From the NCBI GenBank assembly GCA_965637545.1, contig OZ281496.1:18352001-18416000 (forward strand): DNA of 64,000 nucleotides, in the 5' to 3' direction. Below are positions 1,274 to 25,400 of the stretch, piece after piece; position 1 is the first letter of the stretch, and each line of letters begins with the position of its first letter. The stretch is from Phallusia mammillata. Its lineage: Eukaryota. The position numbers and the translations under genes are program-made. The notes below the pieces were generated by a model that had not been told where the DNA came from, did no database searches, and worked only from the letters and a program-made list of their open reading frames with translations.

Positions 1274-4200
1274 TTAGCAACACAATAATTGTCGGGGTTT
1301 ACGTTGTCGTTTTGAACGTCTCGGATTGCCGGGACCATATTCTAAATGTTCAGGGTCCGCGACCTTCGGTGGTGAGGATTGTGTCGTGTCAGGTATTTCC
1401 TCATTTATTCTCTCACTCACGGGGTTAGGATCATCCGCCGGATTTTCATCTTCTTCTGTTGCGTAACGAGGACGGAGTTGTTCAATATGACGTCTCCATA
1501 TAGGTCCTCGCGGAATAACACGTACTTCATGTCGCCTGATAACTTTTGCTGCCACCCAGCGTGGTTGTTGGTTGTGCCTAGGACCAAAGTAAAGGGCATA
1601 ACAAGGATCACCAACTTTGTATGAATAAACGTTTGCTCTTCGCACTAGAGACTGAGATTTGGTGGCGATCTTCGATTGGATCCCTTGTGTGGTGTGGGCT
1701 GGAGATGGAAGCAATGCATCAATCTTTGTACGCATCTGTCGGTGGTTTAAAAGCTCGCTTGGTGAATAACCACTTCCGGCCGGTGTTCGGCGGTGCTGCA
1801 TTAAAAACTCGAGCAGCGCTTCTTTAGGCGGACTTGACGACTTCCGAAGAGCCTGCTTAAAAGTTTGTACCAAGCGCTCAGCAGCGCCATTAGTGGCTGG
1901 ATGGTAAGGTGCTCCTGTAACGTGAACTATTCCTCGCTCTTTGCAATAATTCTGAAATTGTTCGGACATGAACGTGGGAGCATTATCTGTCACAAGCGTG
2001 TGAGGATAACCGAAATGAGAAAAGTCGTTCTCCAAAAGATCGATTGTAGTTTTTGCTGATATCGACTGCGTCGGATGAATACACGGGTATTTCGAATATG
2101 CGTCAATTAGCAGCAACCAGTTGTAACCCATGAAGTTAATTGCATGGTCAACATGTAACCGACTCCACGGCTTTTCTGGACTCATCCATGGATGCAGGGC
2201 AACTTTTGATGGAGCATTCTGATATACCGCACACGTATTACACTTTCGGCAGAGATCAACGATGTCCCTGTCGATGTTTGGCCAGTAGACTGCTGTACGA
2301 GCCAACTGCTTCATACGCTGCATACCGAAGTGTCCTTCGTGTAGTAGTTTAAGAACTTTTGGTCGAATACTTTCAGGAATCACCGCTCGTGAGCCGTATA
2401 ATAGACATCCGTAGCATGTGCTCAATGATTCTTTAATTTTTCGAAAACTCTCTGCTGGATCATTTATATCCTCTATGCGAAATTTCGCCGGCCATCCTTC
2501 TCGAGTATAACGCATCACCTTGGTCAATGTAGGATCTTTGGCAGTCTCTTTCTGCAAAGAATACGAATCTGATGGTTGAACTTGTAAACTCAAAGATCGA
2601 ATATTGCAAACGGTATCTACATCGTGAGCACTTTCTTTTCCGTCAAAAACTGGATCTTGACCCACAGGTAAGCGGCTTAGGACATCAGCATTTTGATGCT
2701 CTGACGTTTTGCGGTAAACTATGTCGTATGAAAATTGATTTAAGAATAATGCCCATCGAGCTAAACGATTGGCTGCAAGGGCTGGAGTAGCCTTGTTTGG
2801 CCCAAACAGCAACAGCAAAGGCTTGTGATCGGTCACAAGGATAAACTTCCTCCCAAACAAGTATTGATAGAACTTCTTTAGAGCGTAAACAATTGCTAAA
2901 GCTTCTTTTTGTATTTGACTGTAATTTCGTTGACTGTTGGTCAATGTCTTCGATGCATTGGCTATCGGCCGCTCGCTACCATCTGGATAACGGTGAAACA
3001 ATACAGCTCCGATACCAACGTTAGAGGCGTCACACGCAATTCCAACAGGCAACGTCTGGTCAAAATGCGTGAGCACGTTGTTGGATGACAACATACGTTT
3101 TAGTTGCTCAAATGCGTCTTGTTCTGTTTCTTGCCACTTCCACTCGACACCTTTTCTTGTAAGTCGGTGTAACGGTTCTGACACTGTTGAAAAATTCGGT
3201 GGCATGAACTTGCCGTAAAACTGCACAGAACTAAGAAACGAACGAAGTGTTGAGACGTTGTGCGGCGGAGGCATTTTAATGACGTCATCGACTTTTGTAC
3301 CTTTTTCTACTCCGTCCTTTGATAATATGTGGCCCAAATACTCCACCTTGTTTTGGGCAAATTTGCATTTTTCCATGCGACAACGAAGACCCTTCTTGTC
3401 TAATCTTTCAAAAAGACGTCGCAGATTTTTGAGATGATCATCGGCAGAAGAACCACTCACGAGGATATCATCTAAATATACAGCAACTCCTGGTAAATCA
3501 CAGGTAAGGTCATCCATGATTTTCTGAAAATAACTTGGAGCAGAAGATATACCAAACGGCAAAACGTTTTGCAGCAATACACCACGGTGCGTGCTAAGTG
3601 CCAACCTCTTTCTGCTTTCGGGGCCTAGCATGATTTGATTATACGCATCCGCAAGATCTATCTTTGTAAAACCATGTCCACCCCCAAGTCTTCGTATTAA
3701 TTCGTCTGGTAGAGGTAATGGATGACGATGCGTTTTAAGTTGAGGATTAACGGTAACGGAATAATCTCCACAAACTCTCAAATTAGCTTTGCATGTTCCA
3801 GGTAAAACTGCTTTTCGGACTGGTACAACTGGAGTTCCCCAGGAATTAAATTGAACTGGCGTCCAGATGCCCCTCGATATGCCAGCGTCGTAGGCCTGGT
3901 TGAGATCCTCTTGCAAAGCTATTGGGACGGCTCTAGGCTTGCAGAATATAGACTTTGTCTCGGGTTGAAAATTTATTTCAAGCTCGTAGCCTTTCAAACA
4001 ACCAAGTTCAGATTTAAACAAGTTTGGAAAACTTTCGCAAAGTTTTCGGCACTCTTGTGCGAGATTTTGTTCCTCAATTTTGTCGATAATGTTGACCGGA
4101 TTTTCTTTGTGAAGAATGTCGTCTAAAGAAATATGCATCTTCTTGATGGCGTCACGACCTAATAGATTCAGCTTAGGGATGCTTGAAACAAGTAACGTAA

Positions 4201-4489
4201 TGTTACAATCCTTGTTTGACCCAGCATGTCTCGCCATAGCTGTAAAAGAACCTAGGATTGGCATGGGATGATCTGTAGCAGATTGATATCGCGTATCTGG
4301 GTCTCGAAGCTTCGGCTTTCCAAGACTTTTCCAGGCCGCAATGGACAGAAAATTTCCACCTGCAGCGGTGTCGAGTTCCATGATGCAAGTTTTCTTGTTG
4401 ATAGAAATTGGAACCTCCAATTTTGGAACTTTAGCTACTTGGTTTGAAATATTTTTCACAGTAAACTTGTCGACACATTTTACTTTCAT
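1274..4489 (-). CDS. pol: Gypsy Pol polyprotein (protease, RT, RNase H, integrase), open for 1071 aa
   Basis: Protease LDTAA; RT KIDLADAYNQ, LPFGI and YLDDIL; RNase H CDASNVGIGAVL, TDHKPL and NADVLSR; integrase HX3GH..CX2C, HVDH, LVTDN and NGAAERLVQTFK. Confidence 0.96.
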   Translation of the reverse strand: MKVKCVDKFTVKNISNQVAKVPKLEVPISINKKTCIMELDTAAGGNFLSIAAWKSLGKPKLRDPDTRYQSATDHPMPILGSFTAMARHAGSNKDCNITLLVSSIPKLNLLGRDAIKKMHISLDDILHKENPVNIIDKIEEQNLAQECRKLCESFPNLFKSELGCLKGYELEINFQPETKSIFCKPRAVPIALQEDLNQAYDAGISRGIWTPVQFNSWGTPVVPVRKAVLPGTCKANLRVCGDYSVTVNPQLKTHRHPLPLPDELIRRLGGGHGFTKIDLADAYNQIMLGPESRKRLALSTHRGVLLQNVLPFGISSAPSYFQKIMDDLTCDLPGVAVYLDDILVSGSSADDHLKNLRRLFERLDKKGLRCRMEKCKFAQNKVEYLGHILSKDGVEKGTKVDDVIKMPPPHNVSTLRSFLSSVQFYGKFMPPNFSTVSEPLHRLTRKGVEWKWQETEQDAFEQLKRMLSSNNVLTHFDQTLPVGIACDASNVGIGAVLFHRYPDGSERPIANASKTLTNSQRNYSQIQKEALAIVYALKKFYQYLFGRKFILVTDHKPLLLLFGPNKATPALAANRLARWALFLNQFSYDIVYRKTSEHQNADVLSRLPVGQDPVFDGKESAHDVDTVCNIRSLSLQVQPSDSYSLQKETAKDPTLTKVMRYTREGWPAKFRIEDINDPAESFRKIKESLSTCYGCLLYGSRAVIPESIRPKVLKLLHEGHFGMQRMKQLARTAVYWPNIDRDIVDLCRKCNTCAVYQNAPSKVALHPWMSPEKPWSRLHVDHAINFMGYNWLLLIDAYSKYPCIHPTQSISAKTTIDLLENDFSHFGYPHTLVTDNAPTFMSEQFQNYCKERGIVHVTGAPYHPATNGAAERLVQTFKQALRKSSSPPKEALLEFLMQHRRTPAGSGYSPSELLNHRQMRTKIDALLPSPAHTTQGIQSKIATKSQSLVRRANVYSYKVGDPCYALYFGPRHNQQPRWVAAKVIRRHEVRVIPRGPIWRRHIEQLRPRYATEEDENPADDPNPVSERINEEIPDTTQSSPPKVADPEHLEYGPGNPRRSKRQRKPRQLLCC

Positions 4490-5418
4490 TGATTCGTGAT
4501 ACGCTTTCTTTCTGCAGACCGACTGTAAATGCCCACGTCGTTTGTTGAAGCCTTAAAACGACATTCACTTGCAAAATGGCCCTTCTTGCCACAACGATAA
4601 CAATTATATGAGCTTGAATTCTCGTTCTGGAGCTCTGCAGAAGGAACCTCCCGGTGTCGCTGATTCCTTGGACGAAACTTGCGCACCTTGTTTACCTCAC
4701 TTTGTTGCGTCCCGTAAACGGTTTCTTTAGCAACTCTAGCGGCGTCCTCGGTCTCCATGGCGACTTGAACTGCCCATGCGAAAGTCAACTCGTCACTTTT
4801 AATTTTAAATACGGCCTTTAGAACTGCTTCATTTTTTACGGAACAAATAAAGCGTGTACGAAGTGCCTCATCTAACGGATCCTTGATGGATGGAAAATCA
4901 CAGGTGCTGGCGTCTTGACGGATTCGTGCTGCCAGTTCCTGGATTGCTTCTCCTGGTTTGCGCTTCATCTCACTCCAGTAGCGAAATCGTTCCCGCACAA
5001 CAAAAAGTTTGGGATCAAACTGGTCTTTCATGAAACCTACGATTTCTTCCATCGTCAAATCGTTGACTTGCTTCGGCGGCGAACTTTGACCTGCTAAATT
5101 GGCCAACAACTTATATACCGTACTAGTCTGGTTGGTCAAAAACACTTGTGCTTTGCGGTCATCGGACACAGCATCTGCCTTGAAAAACGTGCGAAATCTC
5201 GACCAATAATCTTCCCACAATTCCATGGTTTGATCAAACGCTGGAAAATTGGGCGTGGCTGTGCTGGAACTGGGCGTGGCGGAACTTTCAGATGTCGACG
5301 ACTGCTTCAAGAAGTTCATCAAAGTTTCCATTTGGTCTTGATGTCGGCGTTCTTGCTCTTGGTGTCGGCGTTCTTGCAGTTCCATCTGTTTTTGCATGGC
5401 TTCTAAAAATTTCTCCAT
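4486..5418 (-). CDS. gag: Gypsy Gag, 310 aa
   Basis: Capsid-like region followed by zinc knuckle CYRCGKKGHFASEC; lies directly downstream of the PBS. Confidence 0.93.
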   Translation of the reverse strand: MEKFLEAMQKQMELQERRHQEQERRHQDQMETLMNFLKQSSTSESSATPSSSTATPNFPAFDQTMELWEDYWSRFRTFFKADAVSDDRKAQVFLTNQTSTVYKLLANLAGQSSPPKQVNDLTMEEIVGFMKDQFDPKLFVVRERFRYWSEMKRKPGEAIQELAARIRQDASTCDFPSIKDPLDEALRTRFICSVKNEAVLKAVFKIKSDELTFAWAVQVAMETEDAARVAKETVYGTQQSEVNKVRKFRPRNQRHREVPSAELQNENSSSYNCYRCGKKGHFASECRFKASTNDVGIYSRSAERKRITNQ

Positions 5419-9315: not shown

Positions 9316-12300
9316 GTCTAAACTGTACTAATAGCATGAACATGGACATTGCGTGTGCACTCTTTCGGCGTCGGAAACTACCTGGCAGGGTTTCTTTTTG
9401 GTATTCTAATTTCATGTAACCCCCACCCTCTTTTACTAACACGAGTGGTTAGTTTTTTGAGCAAATTTTTCACATGTCTTGGGTCGTAAACAAAAACGAT
9501 CAGGGACAGGCAAAAAAATGATCCAGCAAAACAGCATAACGCCGAGGGGGCGTGCCTTAACTTGTGGTAACCTAAGCAGGTTATACTCCCCTGCCTGACT
9601 GATCTCTGTTTGGTAAACCGCGCCCATCAATCCTGACAAAATACTAACGGCCATGCAAGCACGACGAATATCTGTATTGACAAAGTTTGTGTCTGTTGTT
9701 CAAAAAGCAACTTGTATGTGGACAAAACAAGTGTCTTTGACCCGATTCCTGGCGCGGGGCTTACCAGCTCCTGTCACACAGGTGTCCACCAAAACCCATT
9801 CGCTACAATGGCTGCAGAAAAGCGGTTTTACAAAAACACAAAACTTGGAAAATAAACCAATGCTGAATGCGTGAAGCTATGATGAACAACTTTGTATGTC
9901 TGTGCCATATAAATGTTTGCAGCTAGGCTTCTGTTTTCATTGTCAAGGGCGTGCACAACCGAAAACACAAAAAACCAATTGGTGCCGGAATTAAATTTAA
10001 AAAATTGTAACACTTTCCGATTGCCGATATATTTTTGTTACAATTTTTCAAGGCAAGAATCATCAGCTGGAGAAAAAACTTGTACTACTAGGGCAGTGCG
10101 AGCATAATTATTTTAACTGCAAGTTAAGAAATTTTACGTTCATCTATTTGAACCCTTTCATGACTTCTTCACAGTGTAATTAGGAGTCTTGCGATGCAAA
10201 CAAATCATTTGTTAGTGCTAACAGCCCGAACGAGCTGAAAATAGTATTTTTGTCCATAAACACGACGCCTTCCACCCTCTCGTGATAAAATAATATTTTT
10301 AAAAAACAACTGTCAGTGGGCGCTAAGGAGTCTATTATCTTAACCCAAAAATAGTATGCGAAAAACGGCTTGAAGTGACCATGATAAATTAAAAGCACAA
10401 TTTTGAAAGGTAACTTGACAACATTTAATACTATTGATGCGCGCCGTGTTTTTTTTATTGTCATGTTTCATGCGAATTTGCCTTTGAAGCAAATTTGCCT
10501 TTTATCGTTAAATAATCACAATACACTTGCATTTTTTTAGTAAATTTTGATTTTTTTCGATTGATTTGAAGCCGACCCACCGGATAGAAACGACCAATTT
10601 AAAGGGAGTAAAACCGCTCCCTTTGTCGTTTACTGCAAAGTTTTTGTTTTCAACCCAAATGGGCACCAAAAACAAACGACGTTGTCATGGAGATAGCGTC
10701 CTCCTAATTGAAGAATTTCTTTACCAGTAGTTACCAGTAGTTGATGAAACTAGCAACTTAGCATAGGTTACGGCAGTGTTTCAAATTTTCATCCGAAGAG
10801 CAAAGGTTTTGTGGGTTCACTTGTAAAGATAGCAACACCCCAAAAAGCGAATTTCATCGAAACTTTTAATTGAAATTTGTTTTAGGCTGATCCTCGAAGC
10901 AAACATTTCAAAATTCAAATGAAAACTTTTTATTTAAGTGTAAAGAATACGACACAGTAACGACCAACTTGTTGAATGATTGTGCTTTGGGATTGTTGAC
11001 TTGGGTTTTTGATGACACGCCACTTTGCTATGAGCATCAAACGAATTGAGCCAACAGCGAGGAGTTGGTAAATGCGCACTTCAGATTGAGACTCGTACGC
11101 TAATAATAACCATGTATGATTATTTTGATAACGCATATCTGTTTGTTAACGGCGTGGTGTTTGAACACACTCAAACCCTACGACCGAATTCGGCGAATCG
11201 TGCAGTGACAGAGATAAATACGGTCGAGAAACTGGTATCGACTGTCTTAGTTGGTTATTAACAACAGTTTCGCTAACCGCTGTAGTCATTTCTCTAACAA
11301 AATAATGTGAACTGTCTAATTATCGAGGTACATTAGTTTAATTTAATTTTCATGGCCAGACAAGATGAACCAGATGGAGTTGATTTATTTAATATTTAAC
11401 GAGTTTATAGGGAACTGATGTTAGCATTGGTTATAGTTAGGGCAAATATGTTTTGATTTTTAGAAATAGGTCAAAAATTGTTTACAAAGTCAAATTTTTT
11501 TACAAAGTTAAAATTGTTTACAAACTGCATTGTCGTGGTGTTGTAGAGGTTGCACTGCCAGCAAACTATTGGTTTTACACCTTGTAGCCTACTTTATACT
11601 GCTGTAATTGGCCCATTGCCTCAATTATTGCGAATCATAAACCATCAAGTGAATGAAACAATTAGGATGATATGGCGTGATGCTCAACACACCTCAAAAC
11701 GTGCAAAATTTTGGTATAGGTCCCAAGTCATTTTACGGCAGCTGCAGGTTAGGTGCAGCTCTTGCTTCGGTTTTGCTTCAGATACTTCATGTATCTTTCG
11801 TTTATACAAATGTATTGAATAATTTTCGTTGTGTCTTAGCTGCAGTTTTTTGGCAGTGATTTTTAATTAGCTCATTCCCTTTTCATTCCCTTAGAATAGG
11901 TTAGGTCTATGTTCAGATTTTTGCCCTTCTGTTAGACTTTTGCACATTCTTTCGCTCTAGTTAGATTAGCCTAGCCATATTTTAACTTTTTGAACGATAA
12001 TGCGTAATTTAACTACTTGAATTCTTCATAGGTCAAAATTTTGTCAAAAAAAGTTTTTTAAGGTCAAAATTTGTAGGTCAAAATTTTTCGTTTTTTTACG
12101 TCAAAAAATAATTGCCCTAGTTATAGTCAAACAAGTTGATCCACAAAAGAGTGCCGTTTGCGTTTTTTCAAGGTTGCTGTTAAATTGTTTGGCGATACTA
12201 AAAAATGGAAAAGCGGCGATTTCAAAATTAGTGATTGCGTATGTAAGTAAAAAATCTCATGAGCAGCGATTTTTAACCGGTTCCCTAGAAACGGGGGAAT

Positions 12301-12447
12301 TTTTCAAATAAAAATTTAAAGACTACTGTTTTAGACTATATGATACGTTTATCGTATGCAAAAAAATAATTACTGCTTCGGTCATAAAAGCATTGGCCGT
12401 TGTACAACTTTCTTTTATATTTTACAGGTTTGAGCACATTGAGCAAA

Positions 12448-15144
12448 ATGGAAAATAAAATTGTCTTAACCGTTGAAAAGCTGAAAGCGGTGTGCATAGA
12501 AAATGAACATGGCAAGATGGTTGAAGCTGATATAGCTGCATCCGCGGCAATATTACTTCAGTTGGGGGACATTCTTGTCGAAGATGTGCATAAACATCCT
12601 TACAACTATATACATAGCTTGGGTTTGTTTGTAGCTTCGGGGATAAGGCGACCACACAAAACAGTCGATAAACGTATATCTGACTTGTGGGAAGAATTTC
12701 TTCAACACTCACCAGCAGTTAACAAAACTTGTAACTTATCTCAAGTTACTGCAAGTATTAAAGAGCGCATTGCTAGGATGAGACAGGATGCTGAAAAATG
12801 TTGTAAAAACTTATTTAGTTTAAAGTGCAAAAGCCAACGAGATGAAGAAGACAAAATATATACGGCCAAACAGATTTCTTCCGCTGTTTCCAAAAACTAT
12901 GTCAATGCAGTGAAGGTGGTTTCAGATATCTGTTCGGATATACTCTTTGGCGATGACAAACAACCTCCATTGTTCGCGCTCTGTGCATTGGGTTCGGTAG
13001 CCAGAGGTGAGGCGACTCCTTATTCCGACTTTGAACACATGATTTTACTTGACGATGGTTTAAGCAACAAAGAATTAGAAAAACAGAAGCACGATATGCG
13101 ATGGTTTACACGGATGTTTCAGTTTCTGATTGTGAATCTTGGGGAAACACCGATTCGCCTGTTGGGCATTCCATGTCTTAACGACTTCTACGCCGAAGAC
13201 AAAAGAAAGGATTGGTTTTATGATGATATTACACCATGTGGAATACGCTTCGATAGCAATATGCCGTTTTCTAGCATTCATCCACTTTCACGTCAAGAAA
13301 CAAAAGCAAAACCATTTCAAACCGAGCTCATTCAAAACGTAACCGCGATGTTGGAATATCTGGACATCCAGTCCATTCAAAGAAATGCATACCACCTCGA
13401 TACGGTTCTGGCTAAATCCGAATATGTATCTGGATGTCAGCGTTTGCATAGTAAGTACAGAGTACTAGTTACCGAAAAACTTGGTAGTCAAACAGATGTC
13501 ATTTTATCCAACATTCAAACATACATGGATAATGAAAATGTTCTTTTTGAAATGAAAAACAAAGTTACACGTTCCAATATTAAAAAGATTTGCTACCGTG
13601 GACCGAGCATTATTATTGGTCACCTCGCCAGTCTTTTTAAAGTGTGAGATTCTAACTCATATGTTATTATTGAACGGCTTGTAGATGGTCGTTACCTAAA
13701 TCCGAATGCCGGACACAATCTTAAGTTCATTGTTGCTCTTTCGTGGGAGTTAAGGATGTCGTTTTGCCTTCGTACCAAGGAACAAATGGCTGAAATGCAA
13801 ACAAACTATACAGATCCCGTTAAAGAACTTGCCAATATTGTTGGAAAGGACACCCTTTTTGCATTTTTCACCATTTGGTACAATTTCTGGAATATCCTGC
13901 AACAAATTGTCTTGGAAATTAAAGACCTGGCTTTATTCTGCCACAGTGATATGAGAGTAACAGATAGGGTAACTAATGAACTTTGGATTTCATATTTGTG
14001 TCCGGAAAACCTCAACCCCAACAGGAAAGTTTGTATCATGCCAAACAACAAACAAAATCTAAGTTCTGCGCTCTTTCTTCAAATCCTGGCTCTTCGTACA
14101 GACGACTTGATTTGTGCTCTGGTGCAATTGTATGATGAGTTTGATCAGTTGTACTTAGAACCATCTTCGGATTTAACTGCTATTCAGCTACGACAAGCAT
14201 CCGATTCGTTCAGAAATCTTTGTATAGCTGTTGATAACCCAAATCAAGACTCAAATGTTAAAATGTCAACTTTGGAAGAATTCTCGAGTAGACTTCTTGG
14301 TCAACATCATGTTAGCCACAACATGACACGCTGCTACGAGGCCATGCACAAACTATACTGTGTTTCAGCACCATACCTACCAAAAACATTTCCCGCACCA
14401 GAAGCTTTTGCCTTCCTTGACCGTGTCACACACTTGTTTGAAAGTGTGACGAAACTGCAGGATTTATGCCTTGCAGATACTGATAAGTTCCTGAAATTGA
14501 CTGAGATCACAAATACGGTTTATGCAACATGCCAAGGACTCGGAAACTTAAAAATGGAAATGCTGTCGGTTTTACGTAATTACAAAAAATCTTCCACTTG
14601 GTTTGTTTGGATTTTAGATCGTTTATTCCGACCTGACCATGGTGCGTTTAACCTCACCGATATCCAAAAGTTTACGCGCCGTGCGTTTGAAAAAAGGCTA
14701 AAAGGTTTTCACAAAGAGATTGTAAACATGAAAAACTCAAATGATCTTGCCATCATTAATATTTCATTGTTGCCACATGTGCCTGCTCGCCAAATAATGA
14801 TTGCCGTTTTAAGCAGACTATCCCGTGGTACTTGCTTTGTGCAAGCGGAATTACTCTATGGTCTGGCTTATTTACTTTACCAGAGAAGCGATTACAACGG
14901 ATGCGTAAATTCATGTTATAAAGCACTGAGTTTTATCACAGATATTTGTGAACAAGTCGATCGTTGCAAGTTTTTTCCCCTTTGGGAAATATTTCGATTG
15001 ATGGGTCTTTCTGCTTTCCGAATGAAAAGATACAAACTGGCAAACGAAGCGTTTTGCTGTGAGATGACAGTAAAGCAAACTCCAACTGACGTATTTTCTG
15101 TTCTTTGTTCGTTTAAGCAAAACTCCATTCCACAAAGCAATTAA
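12448..15144 (+). pseudogene. Intronless GlnD/DUF294-like nucleotidyltransferase + DUF294_C-like helical domain + C-terminal TPR protein (~898 codons), with one in-frame TGA at 13645-13647
   Basis: Track ORFs 12400-13647 and 13756-15144 share one frame and the 36 codons between them are open. Pol-beta-superfamily motif LGSVARGEATPYSDFEHMILL at about 12988-13050. IKKICYRG..FKV*DSNSYVIIERL..NLKFIVALSWELR resembles the DUF294_C/GlnE substrate-binding region. TPR-like helices ELLYGLAYLLYQRSDYNGCVNSCYKAL and FRLMGLSAFRMKRYKLANEAF. Splice acceptor at 12427 precedes the ATG at 12448. Confidence 0.82.
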
Positions 15145-16853
15145 GCTTTAATCGCACATGTTTATTGATCCATCACATAAGTTTAATGATCTTGCGCAAT
15201 TTATTCCTCCTCACCTGTTTGTGGACGTTTTGTCTTTGACAATTTCGCTCTTTATCATCTTTGTTTGTTGATATGTTACAACTGCGCTTAAAATGTCGAC
15301 CTTTGATCGTGTTTTTCTTTCAGTCAGTTCTTGGAACTTGCATGAAAGGCTCTACCCATTGAACACACATATTCGTACGCACAAAGGATACATCGTCATA
15401 TGTTTTCTCTAACGTATTATCGTTTGTAAATATTGACCAACGCAATCAGTCCCAGTTGTTCTCACACTGACAGGTGATTTATGTCGAGATTTGCTTGATG
15501 TTAGTCTTATAATATTGTGTTTTTTTGCGCGTACATAATACTTTTTCATAATTCTGAAACCCAATTACTCCAGCGGAGCAATATTATGAGCGCCGCCTTC
15601 ATTACATATCATGTGTGATTTTTTTTCGATCATTGACCTAGATATATGTAGAAAGGCAAGTACACAGATTTCTGAGGATTCGTAACAGTAAAGAGCGTAA
15701 CATGATCGTTTTGCAGCAAATTGTGTGTTGTGATTTGCTTTCCGTCTGACATATTATGTTAAACAAGACAGAAGACCGATTTCTTGCTTTCGAAAATTCC
15801 TTTTACGTTTAATGTGGTCGAATGAAGTACTAATTCAATTGGAGTCTAGTTTAAATAAAAACGCAAGCATCGAAAGAAAAATATACATTTCCCCAGATCG
15901 CGTAATCACAGGCAAACATCGATTTGCGACAAAGACATTAAAAATGGGATGTTGCACTGTTACTGAGTGACAACTTGCACAAATAATTTCCGATGTTAAC
16001 TTTTAATGCAACAACGTATCAAACATAATACTCTGCGATCTTGGATTGCGTGCTATACAAGTACGACCGTAAATAAACCATGAAGAGTTTGTCATCATGA
16101 TTACTTTTAATTTTATGTGCATTTATCACTTTAAGTTTAATAAAGTGCGTTGTATAATGGATTTTTGCAAGACACTGTGAATCAAATATTAGCATTGATT
16201 TTTGTAATTCTGATTACCGATGTAGTTTAGCGAGCTCAGTTTTGAGGCAAGACCTCATCAAGTTTAAGGCATTGTGTAGAAACACCCGTCCCGCTAACCA
16301 GGCCTTGCACACGAACTAACGAGGACTTCAGGCCACTCGCTTGCGCCGAATTCTTGTCGACGAAGCAATAATGCAGATATGTCGGCAATCAATGGCAGGT
16401 GCATATTTTATATGTGAAAGTTCGGACAAACGAAGAAGAATCATCGCTTCACGGAAACTTACAACTTTTCCAATTGAAATATGCGAATGAAAACACACCG
16501 TTGCCTGCCTCGTATGCTGCACATGTCAGCTTCTGACCGGCTGATTCGGTATAACGCCTTCAATAGGCCTGGCGTACTATGATAACATCAAACTCATTTT
16601 CTTTTGCAAAGGAAAATTGTAGCTTTATAATAAACAAAAAAAGTCGAGAGAAATATCGCATCAATTTAAACCAGGACACTCTTTTGTTATAGGGAATTTG
16701 CCGTATAGCATCATATTTACTTTGGTGGTTGTATTAAAATCTAAAGCATAATCAAATGCAAGCAATACTGTGGCCATTAATAGGGACGTGCTTCAATATC
16801 TAAAAGTATATAAAGTAGTCAAGCAGCAAAAAGACCTGTGAATTTGGATGTTA

Positions 16854-19796
16854 GGCGTGTAATTCTATTTCTTGCAATAATGTTGGTCTTTTCTAATGAG
16901 TGTTGTTTACAAAGTGCCAGAAAAACAATGGTAGGTAGACGTTAAGTTATTATCTCCGCGACCCAAAAGTAATCTTAGCACATTAGACTTTCAATGTAGA
17001 CAAAAGCCTCGAGACACAATACAATGATTATGAGACGCAACATCGACTTATCGCCATAACGAGGTGGACGTGAAAGAAAAAAAGGTTACAGTCTCAAGTT
17101 TAGAATGTGGGTAAGAGTATAAGTGCCCAAGTTGTTTTAATCACTGAAATACAATTTGATTTGGATCAAGTGTCGATAATCGAAAATGGCAGAGCGAGAA
17201 AATGCAACATTGGTCGATGGTCGGCGGAAGCACGTGCGATTCACGAAGCTGTGTGTGGTAATCCTGCCATATGTAGGTTTTGCGGCGAAAAGTAGGTTTT
17301 ACGTTCACTAATGTTGTTAAAGAGGTCTTTGAGAAACATCATAGACACATAGTACTTACTTTTAGATTTTCAGACAAGTATGGGATGAAACGTCATGTTG
17401 AGAACTCTTGTCGTAAAAATACAAATCGGGCCAAACCTTTCTATTGTAAAGACTGAGGTAGGAAGTAAGTGGCTTGCTTCATTGTGTTTGATAACTATAG
17501 TGACATTAATAAAATTGGTTAAAACCTTTCTTTTTAAGGTGTCTAAAAAACAATCTAAAACGACACAAAGCAGTTTGTAAGAAGGTTTGGGGAACGGGGA
17601 AAGGGTTTTGTTCAGAAAACATGCAGAATTCCACACTGACTGGGGTTCACCTGGAAGAAGTTAACCGTGAAAGTAAAAGTGAAAATTCGACTGAAAATGC
17701 GCGAGTGGCAACAACTGGTGGTTGGTGAGTATGTTGTGTCAAATGCTTGAAGCTGTATTTCAACATGACTAATTTTCCTGCAGCGAGGACCAGCACATAT
17801 TTATTGAGAATCCTGTATCCATGGAACGTGATATGTGTAATGATAAACACATTGACGAACTCATAACTTCTACCAGCACTTTGTAAGTATGACTAGTGAT
17901 TAACTTTGTGTAGTTTAAGTAGCAAAGACCTAAATAAGTTCACAAACATAATCAGGAAATATTATTGATAAACACACTTTATAGACTATTGAATTGTAAT
18001 TAAATCGCAATGCAACCCTATAAGCAAATGAACATGGTACAGTGATCGATCCAAATCATTTCTTACAATGTGAAATTTTGCATTCATTGTGCTGCATAAT
18101 ATATTGCAAACATACCAATCCACTAGTTTCAGACTGACGCACTTATATTAACTGATTTTTATGCATAATGAAGTACTGAAAATTCCGTGCCCATAATGCC
18201 TGAATCACTACTATACTCTTCAAAGAAAGAAGCACTGACAGATGACACCAATAGCAAAAGCATTCAAAGTGAAGGTAAAAACCGATTTTTCCTATTTAAT
18301 TTCGGTTGCACACTTCCATTGAGCTAACAGCCTTATATATTGATTATACTCTTATAGAGTTATTAACACCTGCAAAGACAACGGGATCTAACATTAGGAT
18401 TGGTGAGGTTTACTCCTGTCAGGTTGATCCAGAAAAACGAGGAAAAAAGCGGAAGCTAGCGTATCAGCCCGATATTAAGGTAGAGAGCAACGTTTGTTTA
18501 TCTGACTATGGATAAATGCATGATTGTTGTTTAATATTTGTTTAAAATACATTGGTTTAAATTTAAACGTTCCTCAATTGACTGCCTTTTTTCTAGATAA
18601 ATTCTTCTGAGCTGAAGAAAAGTCAAAACACCATCGACACTTTTCTGTGCAAATCAAGAACTCAAACTGATAAATACGAAAATTTTGGTCAACTTGTTTC
18701 CTGCAAACTTCGGAAAATGGACCCTGCCATTGCTGACCAGTCGATGAGCGTCATATTGCAGTATCTGTATGATCAGTGTTCTGGACAAAATATTTAACAT
18801 GACTAAACGATGTATCATGTGATCAAATAATTATTGATTTTCTCTTTTTTTATTCCTTAAACTCTAAACTTCAAGTGACAAATTATACAAGGTCTCAAAA
18901 CATTGACAAAACTACGGTTTCTTGCCGCGTTTTGCTTCTGATCTAAACGTAATCAACGGTTTCTTTTTCACAATTTTTACTTTGTTTGAATGAGAATTAT
19001 GTACGGAGTTGCTTGCTATGTACTAGATGTTGGTCCGTACTAAATCTAATTATGACTTATGATATGTGCATTGCGTGAGCCAGTTATTTTGTTATGTTTA
19101 ATAAAATAAAGTATAAATATTAATAACGTTATGCGTTTTAATTGAAATATCGCTACACACTAGACATAACGGCAAAATTAGTGAGTTAAGTTTTCCCGCA
19201 GAGGAATATTATTTCATAAATACAATGCTTGTTTTTTCGGAACTATGACTTTTGTACGTGAATTTGTGCGGACTAATTGATTTTTGCCAAGCAGATTTAA
19301 CAACGGCTAAATTTGTATGTAACTCTTGCAATGCTACTACGAAACAAATAACAAAAAAATACACAACAAATTTTCATCAGTTTTGCTACATTGGGCTGCT
19401 CTGCTAAATTCTACACCTTTTTAATTTCATACCGATTCATTTTTTTCTGCTAAAAGATCACTTTTTTATGGTAACTGCATGTCAAATCGGTTTATTTGTG
19501 AAACTAAAAGTTATTTTTATCTATGTTTCCTGCGCAGAAGTCTTTTAAATCTAGTTACTACTACTTAAAATATCATTAAAATGTAATTTTAATAATTACA
19601 TTTGCGACTTGTTATTTCAAGCGTGACAATCGTTAAGTTCCGATGCGCTGGACTGATTTTCGTGAACTGTTTGCAAAATCAAGCTTGTGACGAAATAAAA
19701 TGCTGTATATAAAATTCTAGACAAAATTTGCAGGAGTTGCCTAAGGGAGCAGTGCGAGATTGTACCAACAAATTTTCTGTGCGCGGATTACACGCC
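16854..19796. mobile_element. Non-autonomous TIR DNA transposon (Harbinger/Zator-like GG termini, TA or TWA target) carrying a zinc-finger gene
   Basis: Inverted match TTAGGCGTGTAAT at 16851-16863 and ATTACACGCCTAA at 19787-19799; TA on both flanks; no transposase seen inside. Superfamily is uncertain. Confidence 0.55.
17186..18797 (+). pseudogene. 7-exon gene: tandem C2HC zinc fingers, basic NLS-like stretch, C-terminal BESS-like motif; TGA at a finger Cys codon
   Basis: Exons 17186-17291, 17366-17464, 17539-17724, 17784-17882, 18174-18274, 18358-18479 and 18597-18797 splice in phase at GT-AG sites. Fingers CRFCGEKFSDKYGMKRHVENSC and CKD*GRKCLKNNLKRHKAVC; KRGKKRK; DKYENFGQLVSCKLRKMDP. AATAAA at 19100. 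The ATG at 17186 is one base out of frame with finger 1. Confidence 0.75.
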
Positions 19797-20938
19797 TAAA
19801 ATAAATAAAAAATTGCTGGTGAATTAATGGAAAATTAAAAATACTGTTCCGTCATCTTTTCTAATCTGGCATGTCGGTACCTAACTTAATCTGTACCTAA
19901 AATGGTTACGTAAAATGTTTTCAACCTCACATGTCAATTGTGTTAGCATCGTTTTCACAGTCACAGTAATTCTTTTAGAATAAAGTGACCGGTTCTATAT
20001 TCGTGGGTTGGTAAACCGCTGTGTACTTCACAGTATCCTAATGGTAAATTAATCCTATGGGCCATTGACCAGAAATATTATGCACAAAGCTTAGAGCGTT
20101 CTTCACTTCATTGGAAGTTTAAGCGTATCAGGGGGATAAAACGAAAAAAAATACAAAGGCGTTTTGATTGGTGTTAAGCGGTGCAACCTATAGCACGTAA
20201 AGGAACATTCCATCGCACTTTGTTTGGTTCCTGGAAGGTTACTTAAAATAAAGTTCAAAGTTTTTTAGCTGCCCAGCTAACAAGACAATTTGTAGTAATC
20301 GCAGGTACTGGTAAAGAATACAAAATACAGCACTTTGTAATGCTAAAAAAATGGGTTCGCAACTGGCATGTGAAAGTTTGAATAACATGCCATCTCGCGT
20401 GTTTACTTACCTAACATCCTCGCAGTGCTTAAAACAGCAGGGGCGGCTCGTGCTAGGGTGCTGCGGAGCTGCAGCACCCCCTAGATATTTTTATAAACCT
20501 ACCATAATATTACAAATAACTTTCATTATTTTTATTTTTTTATTCCTTATCAATATATAATAAGCATAATTTCCGCCCTAATCACCTTTTTTTTCATTAA
20601 AAAAAAATTTTTTTTTTTTTTTGAAACACTAATTTATATCTATGCTGGAACTGCAGCTCCAGTTTTCTGACGTTTCGTGACGTTTCATGACGTTTTGCGG
20701 TTCTGCGCATGCGCACTTTGAAAAGCTACATGCTGGGCGAAATAGGAGCCAGGGTGCTGCGGCTCGCGCAGCTCCACCAATCACGTAGCGTGTGACCAGG
20801 GCACCCGGAAGTAGTTGTTTGTTCCGCGTTTATTGTGTGCCAAAGCAAATCACGTGTACCATCAGGTTCGACAATGAGTACAGTACGACAGTTATTCTTT
20901 TTTAATCATTTTTACAGTTTTTGATTGAAAGGTTAATC

Positions 20939-21480
20939 ATGGCTTTTCAAGATTCTAATTCGGTGACTGTAAGTGAGCTTCAGCAACTTAAGATTTCGCA
21001 GTTATCAAGTGCTGAAAAGGTAAGTATAAAGAAAAAAGGGCGTCCAACGCCTGATATTCAACTTTGTCAGCCAGGAATGAGCCACAACAAGAAATATATA
21101 CGCAGTTTTAATTCTGAATGGTATCAAAAGAAAAAATGGCTTCGTGGTTGTGAAGTTAAAAATGCACTGTTCTGTTTTCCATTTTTGCTGTTTGGAGGTG
21201 ATGAAAAATGCTGGACAAAAGATGGTTTTACAAATGTAGCCAAAATAGGTGAGAAAGCAGAAAAACATGAGAAGTCAAAGAAGCATGTGGACAATGATGT
21301 TTCACTTTCACTTTTGGGAACTGTAAATATTAATGAAAAACTTAGTGAGGCGTATATAGACTTTCAATTATTGAACACAACAAAAAAGTGGAAAAAAATC
21401 GTGAAATTTTGTCCAAAATAATAGACTGCATTTTATTCTGTGGAAACTTTGAAACTCCCTTACGTGGACATGATGAAAAA
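20939..21480 (+). pseudogene. hAT transposase N-terminal remnant (TTF-type zinc finger and start of DUF4371-like region)
   Basis: RSFNSEWYQKKKWL..KNALFCFPFLLF..WTKDGF..KHEKSKKH; after a frameshift, IDCILFCGNFETPLRGHDE. The catalytic core is missing. Confidence 0.88.
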
Positions 21481-22415: not shown

Positions 22416-25400
22416 GTTGTAAATTTTAAAGCTTCAAGGAGTTTTGCACTTAAAAAAGCAATTATAAGCTATTTGCCAGCAAATAAAGCAGCAATTATAG
22501 CAGTTAAAAATCTGAAAGACAAATAATAGTCTGTACACAAAAATTCCAAAAAAAGATGTTAAAATAAACAAGTTCTGACACAAATGTAAAGTGGTTGTTA
22601 AATTTGTCAGTTATGGTACCAATAAACAGCTGTATGGCTAGTTTTTTTGTGACAATTATAATCTGTGAAGGTCATATAATATGTTGAAAACGCTGACTGT
22701 GGCCATAAGGTAACTTAAATGAAATATGACCATTTTTTTGAATGTTGTCGAACTGAAATACTTCGACCTTTTTTGAATCATTACTTTTTTTTCTATATTC
22801 TTGTTGTGTTTTACCGTATTTACAACCGCTTAGTTTCGAGTCTGTGTCACGTGTGTTATTGTTCCACATTATTACTGCATGTTATAGTGTTTAGGCTAAA
22901 CAGTTTAGCCGTCGCTGTGCAAGTAAACAAAATACACAAATGATGCCGTCTGCTATTTACACTCGTGTACATTATTGCGTAACAAAAATTACGTCACAAT
23001 GGAGTTTCTAATTAAGATTTGTATTACTTGTTTTTCTACACAAAACAATGGCTAGAAAACTATAAATGTAGGTTTTCTATATATTGCCAACTTATATATG
23101 TTCAATAAAGGCTAAAATTTTGAGCAGCACCCCCACAAATTTTAGGCACGAGCCGCCACTGTAAAACAGTAAGAATGTTGTGTACTTATTCCTGCCAAGA
23201 TTTTATCATGTCTTGCTTGGAATACTTGAAACATATTTGGCTGAAAAGATGATTACCTCGCTATCATCTTCAATATCTCTAGCTGATGAAGAATCGTCCT
23301 CTGTACAGATTTTTGTTGACATAAGAATATAGCAATATTCTTGCGAAAAAAACGTTAACCACTCCTTTCCTATTTATCAATTTAGCTTACATTATGTTAT
23401 CGTTGTGCTGTATGTATCGTACTAGCCTATAATAATCCAAACAATACAGCAGTCTAACGCATACAAGACGCTACATTTTCCGATTACTTCCAAAGAACCT
23501 TATTGAAACGAGTTGAAGTTAAAGTGGTCAACGATATACCTAAAAGACTAAATAAGCAATCAATTGTGCAGAAGGACAAAGTGATCAGAAATATACACAA
23601 AGGCAAAAATAAGCGATCACTTATGCCACCGAATGGTCTACAATAAGTGAAACGGGGCGCAAGCACAAAAATACTGGTTCGAAAAGTAGTCCACATGCAA
23701 AGAATTGGTTTTTGATAAAATAAAATTGCTGTAAATTGAGCAATTATTTGGTGTCCATTATTTTGTGTTAATTTCGCCACTGGTTTAATAGGTAGGGTTG
23801 CCATCGATCTGGAAACAGAAAGGTAACATATCGCGAATTTCCTCACCAAATATTTTACGAAAGATGTTTAGGGGAAATACTGACAGTTTTGCAAAAAAGT
23901 GCATGCCAAGTAAAATGTTTGACAATTTCCAGTGTTGCCAGACAAAATTTTCACTCGTCATTTTATGCGACATTGCGCTCAAGAACCTTTCTACAAAATA
24001 GCTAAAAGTGGGTCATTTATTTAAATTTCTGTTGTTAAACGAAATTCAGGAAATTTATTTTAGTTTTTTACTGATACGTTTAAATTTTAACGAATTTGGT
24101 CTCAATATACCCGAGAATCAAAAAAGTTTGGTTGTTGGGTACAAATTACAGGATCTTGACTAATTTTAGGGGCAGATTAAGTCTCTTGACTTTCTGTCGT
24201 CCCTTTTAACATTGTCCGACCCTCTGCGATAGCCTTTGCTTTGCACGTAGAGATATGAACCTAAGGCATTGTTGTGAAATCACATGAGAAGTCTCACAAA
24301 ACACAACATTTTGCAACACCTCATATTTAACGATGAAGTTTGTTTTACAGTTATAACTATGGCAAAAAGCAGCAGCCCACTTTTGATATTTGCTGCAAAA
24401 TTTTCAAGCCCACCTATCAACACTGAATTTAAATGCAACCAATCAGGAAAATTGTTGCCGTTAAAAAATCAATTTTATGTTTTTTTATTATTAAATTGAT
24501 TTTTTGCTCGACAAATTTTGCCAAAAACTGAATAGCATACACTTGCAGAATCAAAACGACTGTGATTTCTCGCGATTATACAATTTATTATTTGCGAAGC
24601 AAAACGATAAAACATCGGTAAAGCGCACCTTTGTCATATTATAGCGATACAATGTTATACAATGTGCTTAGATACAACGTTATGCTGATAATGGTTGTTT
24701 CCGTTGAAGACAGGTGTCTAAACAAATTCCAAAGATGTTCTTCTGGACAAATATAATGTAAATATTTAACGTTGTTGTTGCAATTTTTACAAACCTTATT
24801 CAGCCACAAAATGCCATGTGACCAATTAACCCTAAGTTTTTGAACTTATAATGGAGCAGTTTAAAGATTAGTCGGTCACTGGAGCCACTGGGCAAGACGA
24901 CGGAATGACGTAACCAGCTTGACCAAAAATTTCAACTCGGTCAATCGTCATAGTAATGACATCATCAATAGGACAAATGCATCTGCTGTATATGTCGTTG
25001 ATTTCACGGGAAGTCAGAACTCGTGGCCACATCATATAGTTGCTAATTGTTCCACTGAAAAAATAAAAATTGTTTCGCATGAAACGAAACCATTAATATT
25101 GCTTTTCTTTGAAATTATTCGATTAAACAAACTATGCTGAAAAAAAAATCTGACATAATTTGACTTCGAAATAAATGAAATAAGTGATGAATATTGTATT
25201 GTTTCAGTTGGATTACTGAGAAAGGAAACACGTTTTTAATAATGGCAATCCGATGTGTTTTGGAGTATAATTTTGCACCAATTGGAGCCAGGTGGTCCGC
25301 AAAATCAAAATGGAATTTTACGTGGCCATAAAATGAGTATACACCATGATCTACCTACTTAATACCTGAATGACTGAGAAGGACTCAGTCCGCCAGCATT

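Follow-up and report, generated by a model that had tools for sequence, protein, structure and literature searches.

The open reading frame at 12448-15144 (+) of the 64-kb window (the whole stretch of DNA that was analysed) belongs to a large gene family of invertebrates, of which it is a solitary and strongly diverged member. According to a structure model, the enzyme core of its product is a Pol-beta nucleotidyltransferase of the GlnE/DrrA/DUF294 type, and an in-frame TGA cuts the helical domain that follows this core. On balance, we favor the reading that this lone, diverged copy is a recently inactivated gene or a null allele, and that its ancestor probably AMPylated proteins.

Coding sequence of the gene

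Direct translation of the window gives a single frame at 12448-15144 (+), consisting of 898 codons and a TAA. Its own frame contains two stops, a TGA inside the frame (13645-13647) and the TAA at its end (15142-15144), whereas the other five frames have 38-69 stops each. When the segment was shuffled 1000 times, the mean number of stops was 58 and the minimum 37. Since the shuffles never fell below 37 stops versus the two observed, the open frame is far beyond chance, and the frame of about 898 codons that had been proposed in a first-pass annotation of the letters is real. The start ATG at 12448 aligns with the first methionine of the relatives. The coding sequence is also free of introns, as claimed in that annotation, with homology in the same frame resuming within ~10 bases past the TGA.

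The TGA divides the gene into two parts. Coding part 1 (12448-13644, +; codons 1-399) comprises a TPR-like cap, long helices, the nucleotidyltransferase core and the first portion of the helical domain, and coding part 2 (13648-15144, +; 498 codons and the TAA) carries the remaining helical domain and an all-helical tail. Upstream, a pyrimidine tract with an AG, 20 bases before the ATG (12420-12427, +), is a candidate 3' splice or trans-splice acceptor as far as the sequence goes; one RNA run gave no coverage of this site. No polyadenylation signal (AATAAA or ATTAAA) occurs within 556 bases past the stop, and no contig of RNA from the gene was obtained in the one small RNA run, though the same run covers the repeat just upstream. 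According to tblastn searches with the relatives, the gene is the only family copy within the window.

The nucleotidyltransferase core resembles GlnE and DrrA

Pfam DUF294 (PF03445) matches residues 168-232 of the gene product (E 1.4e-6; 28.7 bits, cut-off 21). The metal-binding motif G-X11-D-X-E, GSVARGEATPYSDFE, is located at 12991-13035 (+) and covers residues 182-196, i.e., G182, 11 residues and D194-F-E196; the coordinates given for it in the first-pass annotation were exact. G182...D194-F-E196 conforms to the catalytic motif of GlnE/DrrA-type adenylyltransferases, G-X11-[D/E]-X-[D/E]. The form G-X11-D-X-D has been described for SidM/DrrA, whose domain is structurally similar to GS-ATase (PMC12409994). 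Among 52 aligned family members, the residues S193, D194, E196, E233, D259 and D269 are all invariant. D269 is the last residue of the GIRFD stretch (13240-13254, +; residues 265-269), the position of which (~13252) had likewise been placed correctly, and the conservation of this aspartate makes it a candidate for the third acid. The third metal ligand could be D269, E233 or D259, which are all candidates by conservation.

An AlphaFold model of codons 1-399 was built from the 52-sequence family alignment and reached a mean pLDDT of 86.7 and a pTM of 0.87. In VIA-align comparisons, this model matched DrrA with Z 16.3 and 13.1 and GlnE with Z 13.9 and 12.9, followed by the next match at Z 9.3. 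Foldseek searches of the PDB gave the same two proteins, with entries of GlnE (3k7d, 1v4a) and DrrA (6yx5, 3nku) filling the top five chains. Among the 30 best reviewed UniProt structural matches, 29 were GlnE and one was GlnD, while animal proteins were absent. Based on this model, the enzyme core is a Pol-beta nucleotidyltransferase of the GlnE/DrrA/DUF294 type, and the initial view of a bacterial-type core that is none of the standard animal nucleotidyltransferases was upheld by these reviewed matches. By sequence, a search of the PDB gave no significant match to codons 1-399 (DrrA, E 0.19-0.2).

The gene product differs in domain content from both GlnD and GlnE. NCBIfam GlnD models scored 13-19 bits over ~40-75 residues versus cut-offs of 631-1299, and neither an HD nor an ACT domain, by which a GlnD orthologue would be recognized, was matched by Pfam. 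Pfam GlnE (PF03710) gave no match either, and the protein has a single nucleotidyltransferase core, not two tandem domains. An F-box was not matched by Pfam; the N-terminus is TPR-like instead. VIA-align places TPR-like helical hairpins at residues 1-90 (12448-12717, +), which match the TPRs of Hop, kinesin light chain and P58IPK with Z ~9 and an rmsd of 1.4-2.2 over ~70-75 residues, a likeness that is to be read as resemblance only, as Z ~9 is common among helical repeats. The matches with Z ≤9.3 were mainly TPR or other helical-repeat proteins aligned to residues 1-90, and we therefore refer to the N-terminus as a TPR-like cap.

Because the nearest structural relatives, DrrA and GlnE, transfer a nucleotide monophosphate to protein, the ancestral enzyme would by analogy have transferred AMP from ATP to a protein hydroxyl. 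The alternative that the enzyme does not tag proteins but modifies RNA ends or, similar to cGAS and the CD-NTases, makes a nucleotide second messenger, appears very unlikely to us. The Pol-beta core is common to all these enzymes, and layouts that join a sensor repeat to a nucleotidyltransferase are known in signalling systems. However, DrrA and GlnE, which AMPylate proteins, are the nearest structures, with TPR proteins coming next, and the helical domain behind the core is GlnE/DUF294_C-like. Furthermore, neither Pfam nor PADLOC gave a match to CD-NTase, OAS, Mab21 or cGAS, and none of these was found among the structural matches; PADLOC returned short matches at the level of motifs only, to a small MNT-like model.

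A premature stop interrupts the helical domain

The core is followed by a DUF294_C-like helical region (13579-13884, +), which aligns to the DUF294_C segment of the relatives and is cut by the in-frame TGA at codon 400 (13645-13647, +). The structural match to GlnE extends to model residue 399, and tail residues 5-78 align to residues 421-492 of one relative (P0007), directly after the end of part 1 (E 1e-5). An hhalign comparison against a 12-member family profile led to the same placement, matching tail residues 4-79 only. In addition, five relatives aligned by tblastn continue past the TGA without a change of frame. Since the homology of the relatives runs straight across it in one frame, the TGA interrupts the helical domain. 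The first-pass annotation had described a DUF294_C/GlnE-like helical region here and had named Pfam searches together with AlphaFold and Foldseek as a check. The region is homologous to the segment of the relatives that matches Pfam DUF294_C, and both a DUF294 match above the cut-off and a GlnE/DrrA-like fold were found; a match of the gene's own sequence to DUF294_C (PF10335) was absent. The TGA itself had been recognized there, but little weight was given to the fact that it cuts a conserved domain, which makes the gene a probable pseudogene or null allele.

Two mechanisms by which the TGA could be bypassed were considered and rejected. Donor-like GT dinucleotides are found at 13642 and 13644, yet homology in the same frame is back by 13657, leaving no room for an intron across the TGA. 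Decoding as selenocysteine is disfavored as no SECIS element or other Rfam match was found in 10500-17500, and as the position aligned to the TGA is variable among the relatives.

Contigs of two further read sets span 12069-15776 and 12138-15719 and show zero differences to the assembly, including the TGA. Identity over 3.7 kb may mean that the read sets are not independent and perhaps derive from the same individual as the assembly, and the TGA may for this reason not be fixed in the species. No contig with an alternative allele at the TGA was found, though heterozygous sites are visible ~2 kb downstream.

Across the 898 codons the defects amount to one stop and no frameshift. About 4.7% of the point changes in this frame create a stop, and neutral drift over the long end branch of this gene in the family tree (1.74 changes/site) should have left dozens of stops, of which one is present. 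With one stop despite such a branch, the frame was probably under selection for nearly the whole divergence, and the break would be recent.

The same observations bear on a possible, if somewhat unlikely, alternative, in which the gene is functional and encodes the full 898-residue protein, the TGA being a private allele, a sequencing error or a codon that is read through. In line with this, a single defect is present in 898 codons, the catalytic residues are intact and the three read sets may be non-independent. On the other side, the TGA is found without differences in all contigs, and an alternative contig is missing despite the heterozygous sites downstream. The lack of a SECIS in 10500-17500 and of RNA coverage in one run also speaks against a functional gene. 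We thus retain a recently inactivated gene or null allele as the preferred reading.

The tail is all-helical and largely without detectable relatives

A word-index search retrieved no relatives of the tail (13648-15141), and a phmmer comparison with 283 family proteins yielded no match with E<0.1. Taking the word-index search, hhalign and phmmer together, the tail beyond the first 80 of its 498 residues has no detectable relative. AlphaFold predicts helices throughout the tail, but the model is poor overall (pLDDT 53). Better modelled are residues 1-45 (pLDDT 74-80) and residues 400-480, which form two helix pairs. These TPR-like pairs (14824-15078, +; tail residues 393-477; local pLDDT 70-87) sit in TPR columns of the relatives in the family alignment. 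Pfam TPR_1 aligns to tail residues 400-428 below its threshold (E 0.084; 13.2 bits versus 27.8), and a protein language model puts the tail close to TPR-type solenoids, which we treat as a lead only. The fusion to TPRs claimed at first is therefore true of the family; in this copy, the TPR_1 match at E 0.084 gives it weak support, and the tail consists mostly of helices that could not be classified.

The gene belongs to a large family in invertebrate chordates

When 1.84 billion cluster representatives were searched with a profile, 2407 proteins were recovered with E<0.001, 796 of them with E<1e-30. The family size of 796 refers to clusters at 50% identity with E<1e-30 and is a lower bound. 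Family members are mostly 800-1300 residues long, and the relatives of the gene were matched with E-values of 3e-45 to 1e-35 over 56-98% of the query. In Pfam searches with nine relatives, DUF294 and TPR were detected in all nine and DUF294_C in five; TPR_12 was matched in most of the nine with E-values of 1e-14 to 1e-64. All named family members that were looked up are from Branchiostoma (amphioxus). The best AlphaFold DB clusters (TM up to 0.81, E 6e-18) apparently belong to Branchiostoma, too, judging by name and accession series. In a structural atlas, the clusters of the family are assigned to Eukaryota, mostly Chordata, plus one Chlamydiota cluster with DUF294 and TPR and one cluster from a ciliate. 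Similar architectures in marine invertebrates and intracellular bacteria, as mentioned in the first-pass annotation, do exist, in the form of the amphioxus proteins on the one hand and of Neochlamydia NEX2 (PMC4209131) and the Chlamydiota cluster on the other. A literature search found no study of an animal nucleotidyltransferase-TPR family; many text matches to 'DUF294' were longer DUF numbers, e.g., DUF2946.

Other members are located on long ENA contigs, one of which bears a Pao-type retrotransposon and is thus eukaryotic. Contig L001 from this set has no repeats in common with the window. The genes called in two inspected loci of relatives are single uninterrupted ORFs, and one of these two loci has a gene apparently split into two ORFs. 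An intron-free coding ORF looks like a habit of the family and not like the mark of a recent transfer. On an unrelated ENA contig (L002, 10001-13420), a 247-residue DUF294 ORF and then an 861-residue ORF lie on one strand, 90 bases apart. The two ORFs probably make up a further family member that is interrupted by a stop, a frameshift or a short intron.

Within the family, the gene shows full-length similarity in the cap, the core and the helical domain and keeps all 12 invariant columns. Identity to the relatives is 36-38% at best. A quick maximum-likelihood tree gives the gene an end branch of 1.74 changes/site versus a median of 0.37, and its place is an unresolved join at the base of the non-amphioxus group. 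Of the columns conserved at ≥90%, 72% are kept here versus a family median of 96%, and conserved glycines are replaced (G170D, G180A, G270S, G281S and G314A). These losses may indicate that the activity was changed or lost before the stop arose. Three amphioxus proteins keep 70-74% of the ≥90%-conserved columns, about the same as this copy, and these scores fit an old separate lineage for this copy as well. The most conserved part of the enzyme (13062-13409) has a slightly raised read depth (73 versus 58 and 191 versus 148), a hint that short contigs of paralogs with ≥85% identity are included here.

The gene is host DNA

Read depth over the gene was close to that of its flanks in two read sets (58 versus 55 and 148 versus 138), and a single contig joins the gene to the flanking repeats. 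As the depth equals that of the flanks and contigs reach the repeats, the segment is single-copy host DNA, which rules out contamination or a chimeric join. In G+C content, the gene agrees with its flanks. Relatives were also sought in 185,579 bacterial and archaeal genomes by two motif scans, which detected none; these scans used the family's own motifs, so that distant DUF294 proteins could be missed.

It is extremely improbable that the segment is contaminating bacterial DNA or was acquired horizontally only very recently. Such an origin would agree with the intron-free coding sequence and with an enzyme type that is best known from bacteria. However, single contigs link the gene to host repeats at a depth and a G+C content like those of the flanks, and the best relatives lie on eukaryotic, retrotransposon-bearing contigs, the named ones being from amphioxus. 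In addition, no motif match was found in the 185,579 bacterial and archaeal genomes, and the inspected loci of two relatives likewise have an uninterrupted coding ORF. The recent horizontal acquisition that had been proposed for this gene must hence be given up in favor of a diverged member of a eukaryotic family of at least 796 clusters. An ancient bacterial origin of the family as a whole is possible.

In a run labelled as another organism (X4), two 151-base contigs with a depth of 2 were identical to 14990-15140 and 15182-15332. This run contained nothing for the remaining gene and may reflect sample carry-over or a very close relative.

Genomic surroundings

A very high-copy repeat is located at 11495-12190, 0.25 kb upstream of the gene, with a summed contig depth of 3e4-3e5 versus 55-148 in the single-copy flanks. 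It occurs in many variants with internal joints, is also found in contigs of the RNA run and of the run of a second organism, and has no match in Rfam. Further away, 7 kb upstream, an LTR retrotransposon (1274-5418, -) carries an open gag-like ORF of 310 aa with a zinc knuckle and a pol ORF of 1071 aa with RT, RNase H and integrase. A 166-residue ORF at 20921-21421 (+) has no Pfam match; by eye, we take it to resemble the zinc-finger N-terminus of hAT-type transposase-derived proteins. At 24868-25080 (-), ~9.7 kb downstream, a short ORF resembles a pentraxin-like exon by eye and looks like the end of a pentraxin domain. The position between two lectin-like genes, taken at first as a hint to innate immunity, was not confirmed, as none was found upstream and this pentraxin-like exon is located downstream only. 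A loose neighbourhood of this kind in an animal genome says little about function.

Discussion

In the reading that we prefer, a family member would be encoded by a single coding exon and would consist of a TPR-like cap, a GlnE/DrrA-type nucleotidyltransferase, a helical substrate-binding domain and a helical-repeat tail. The ancestor of this copy would have modified a hydroxyl of a target protein with a nucleotide monophosphate (probably AMP), and the repeat arms may have chosen this target or held the enzyme in check. The TGA at codon 400, cutting the helical domain, would have turned the gene into a recently inactivated gene or a null allele, presumably with loss of function. At most, a 399-residue enzyme would be made, which would be devoid of most of the substrate-binding and repeat parts.

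A recent review of AMPylation from 2025 names FICD and SelO as the eukaryotic enzymes and covers the GlnE/DrrA type only via bacterial GlnE and Legionella SidM (PMC12409994). If the reading proposed here holds true, the family would join FICD and SelO as a third class of AMPylase in animals and could constitute a new type of sensor-enzyme, present as a very large family in invertebrate chordates. The gene or its family may have an immune role. A more far-reaching version, which we regard as speculative and unlikely, would see in the family animal GlnE/DrrA-type AMPylases that form a diversifying sensor-effector repertoire, with this copy as an old lineage that has its own target-binding tail and with the TGA as a segregating null allele. 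Segregating null alleles are common in immune gene families.

The locus itself demonstrates that isolated, deeply diverged copies of the family exist and that a single stop can knock such copies out. It also demonstrates that the gene belongs to the host genome and did not come in recently from bacteria. For experimental tests, this broken copy is less suitable than intact members of the family.

Comparison with known systems

Among the closest known proteins are uncharacterised amphioxus sequences named 'Protein-PII uridylyltransferase N-terminal domain-containing protein' (e.g. XP_019620734.1), which belong to the same family with profile E-values down to 1e-233. They are 26-28% identical to this copy and contain clear TPR_12 arrays, which are absent here. 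Outside of animals, Neochlamydia NEX2 was described as a protein with F-box, DUF294 and TPR that has undergone a lineage-specific expansion (Domman et al. 2014, PMC4209131). NEX2 and the animal family have DUF294 and C-terminal TPRs in common; NEX2, however, carries an N-terminal F-box and sometimes an OTU domain, whereas the gene described here has no F-box.

Bacterial DUF294 proteins, in which a cNMP-binding domain or CBS is combined with DUF294 and DUF294_C, share PF03445 and are structural neighbours of the family's best cluster. Their partners are CBS, Cache or exonuclease domains, and the TPR arms are missing. No assignment of a function to these bacterial proteins was found in the literature that was searched.

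E. coli GlnE (3k7d, 1v4a) has both the core and the next helical domain in common with the gene product, with Z 13.9 and 12.9 over 231-240 residues. In contrast to GlnE, which contains two tandem nucleotidyltransferase domains and Pfam GlnE, the protein described here has one such domain and lacks PF03710. Nor does the gene described here have a link to nitrogen control.

The best structural match is the N-terminal domain of DrrA/SidM from Legionella pneumophila (6yx5, 3nku), with Z 16.3 and an rmsd of 3.7 over 184 residues. Some relatives in the animal family even show weak matches to Pfam SidM_N. DrrA is a secreted bacterial effector equipped with GEF and PI4P-binding domains, whereas the gene described here is a host gene with TPR-like arms; what the two have in common is the motif G-X11-acid-X-acid.
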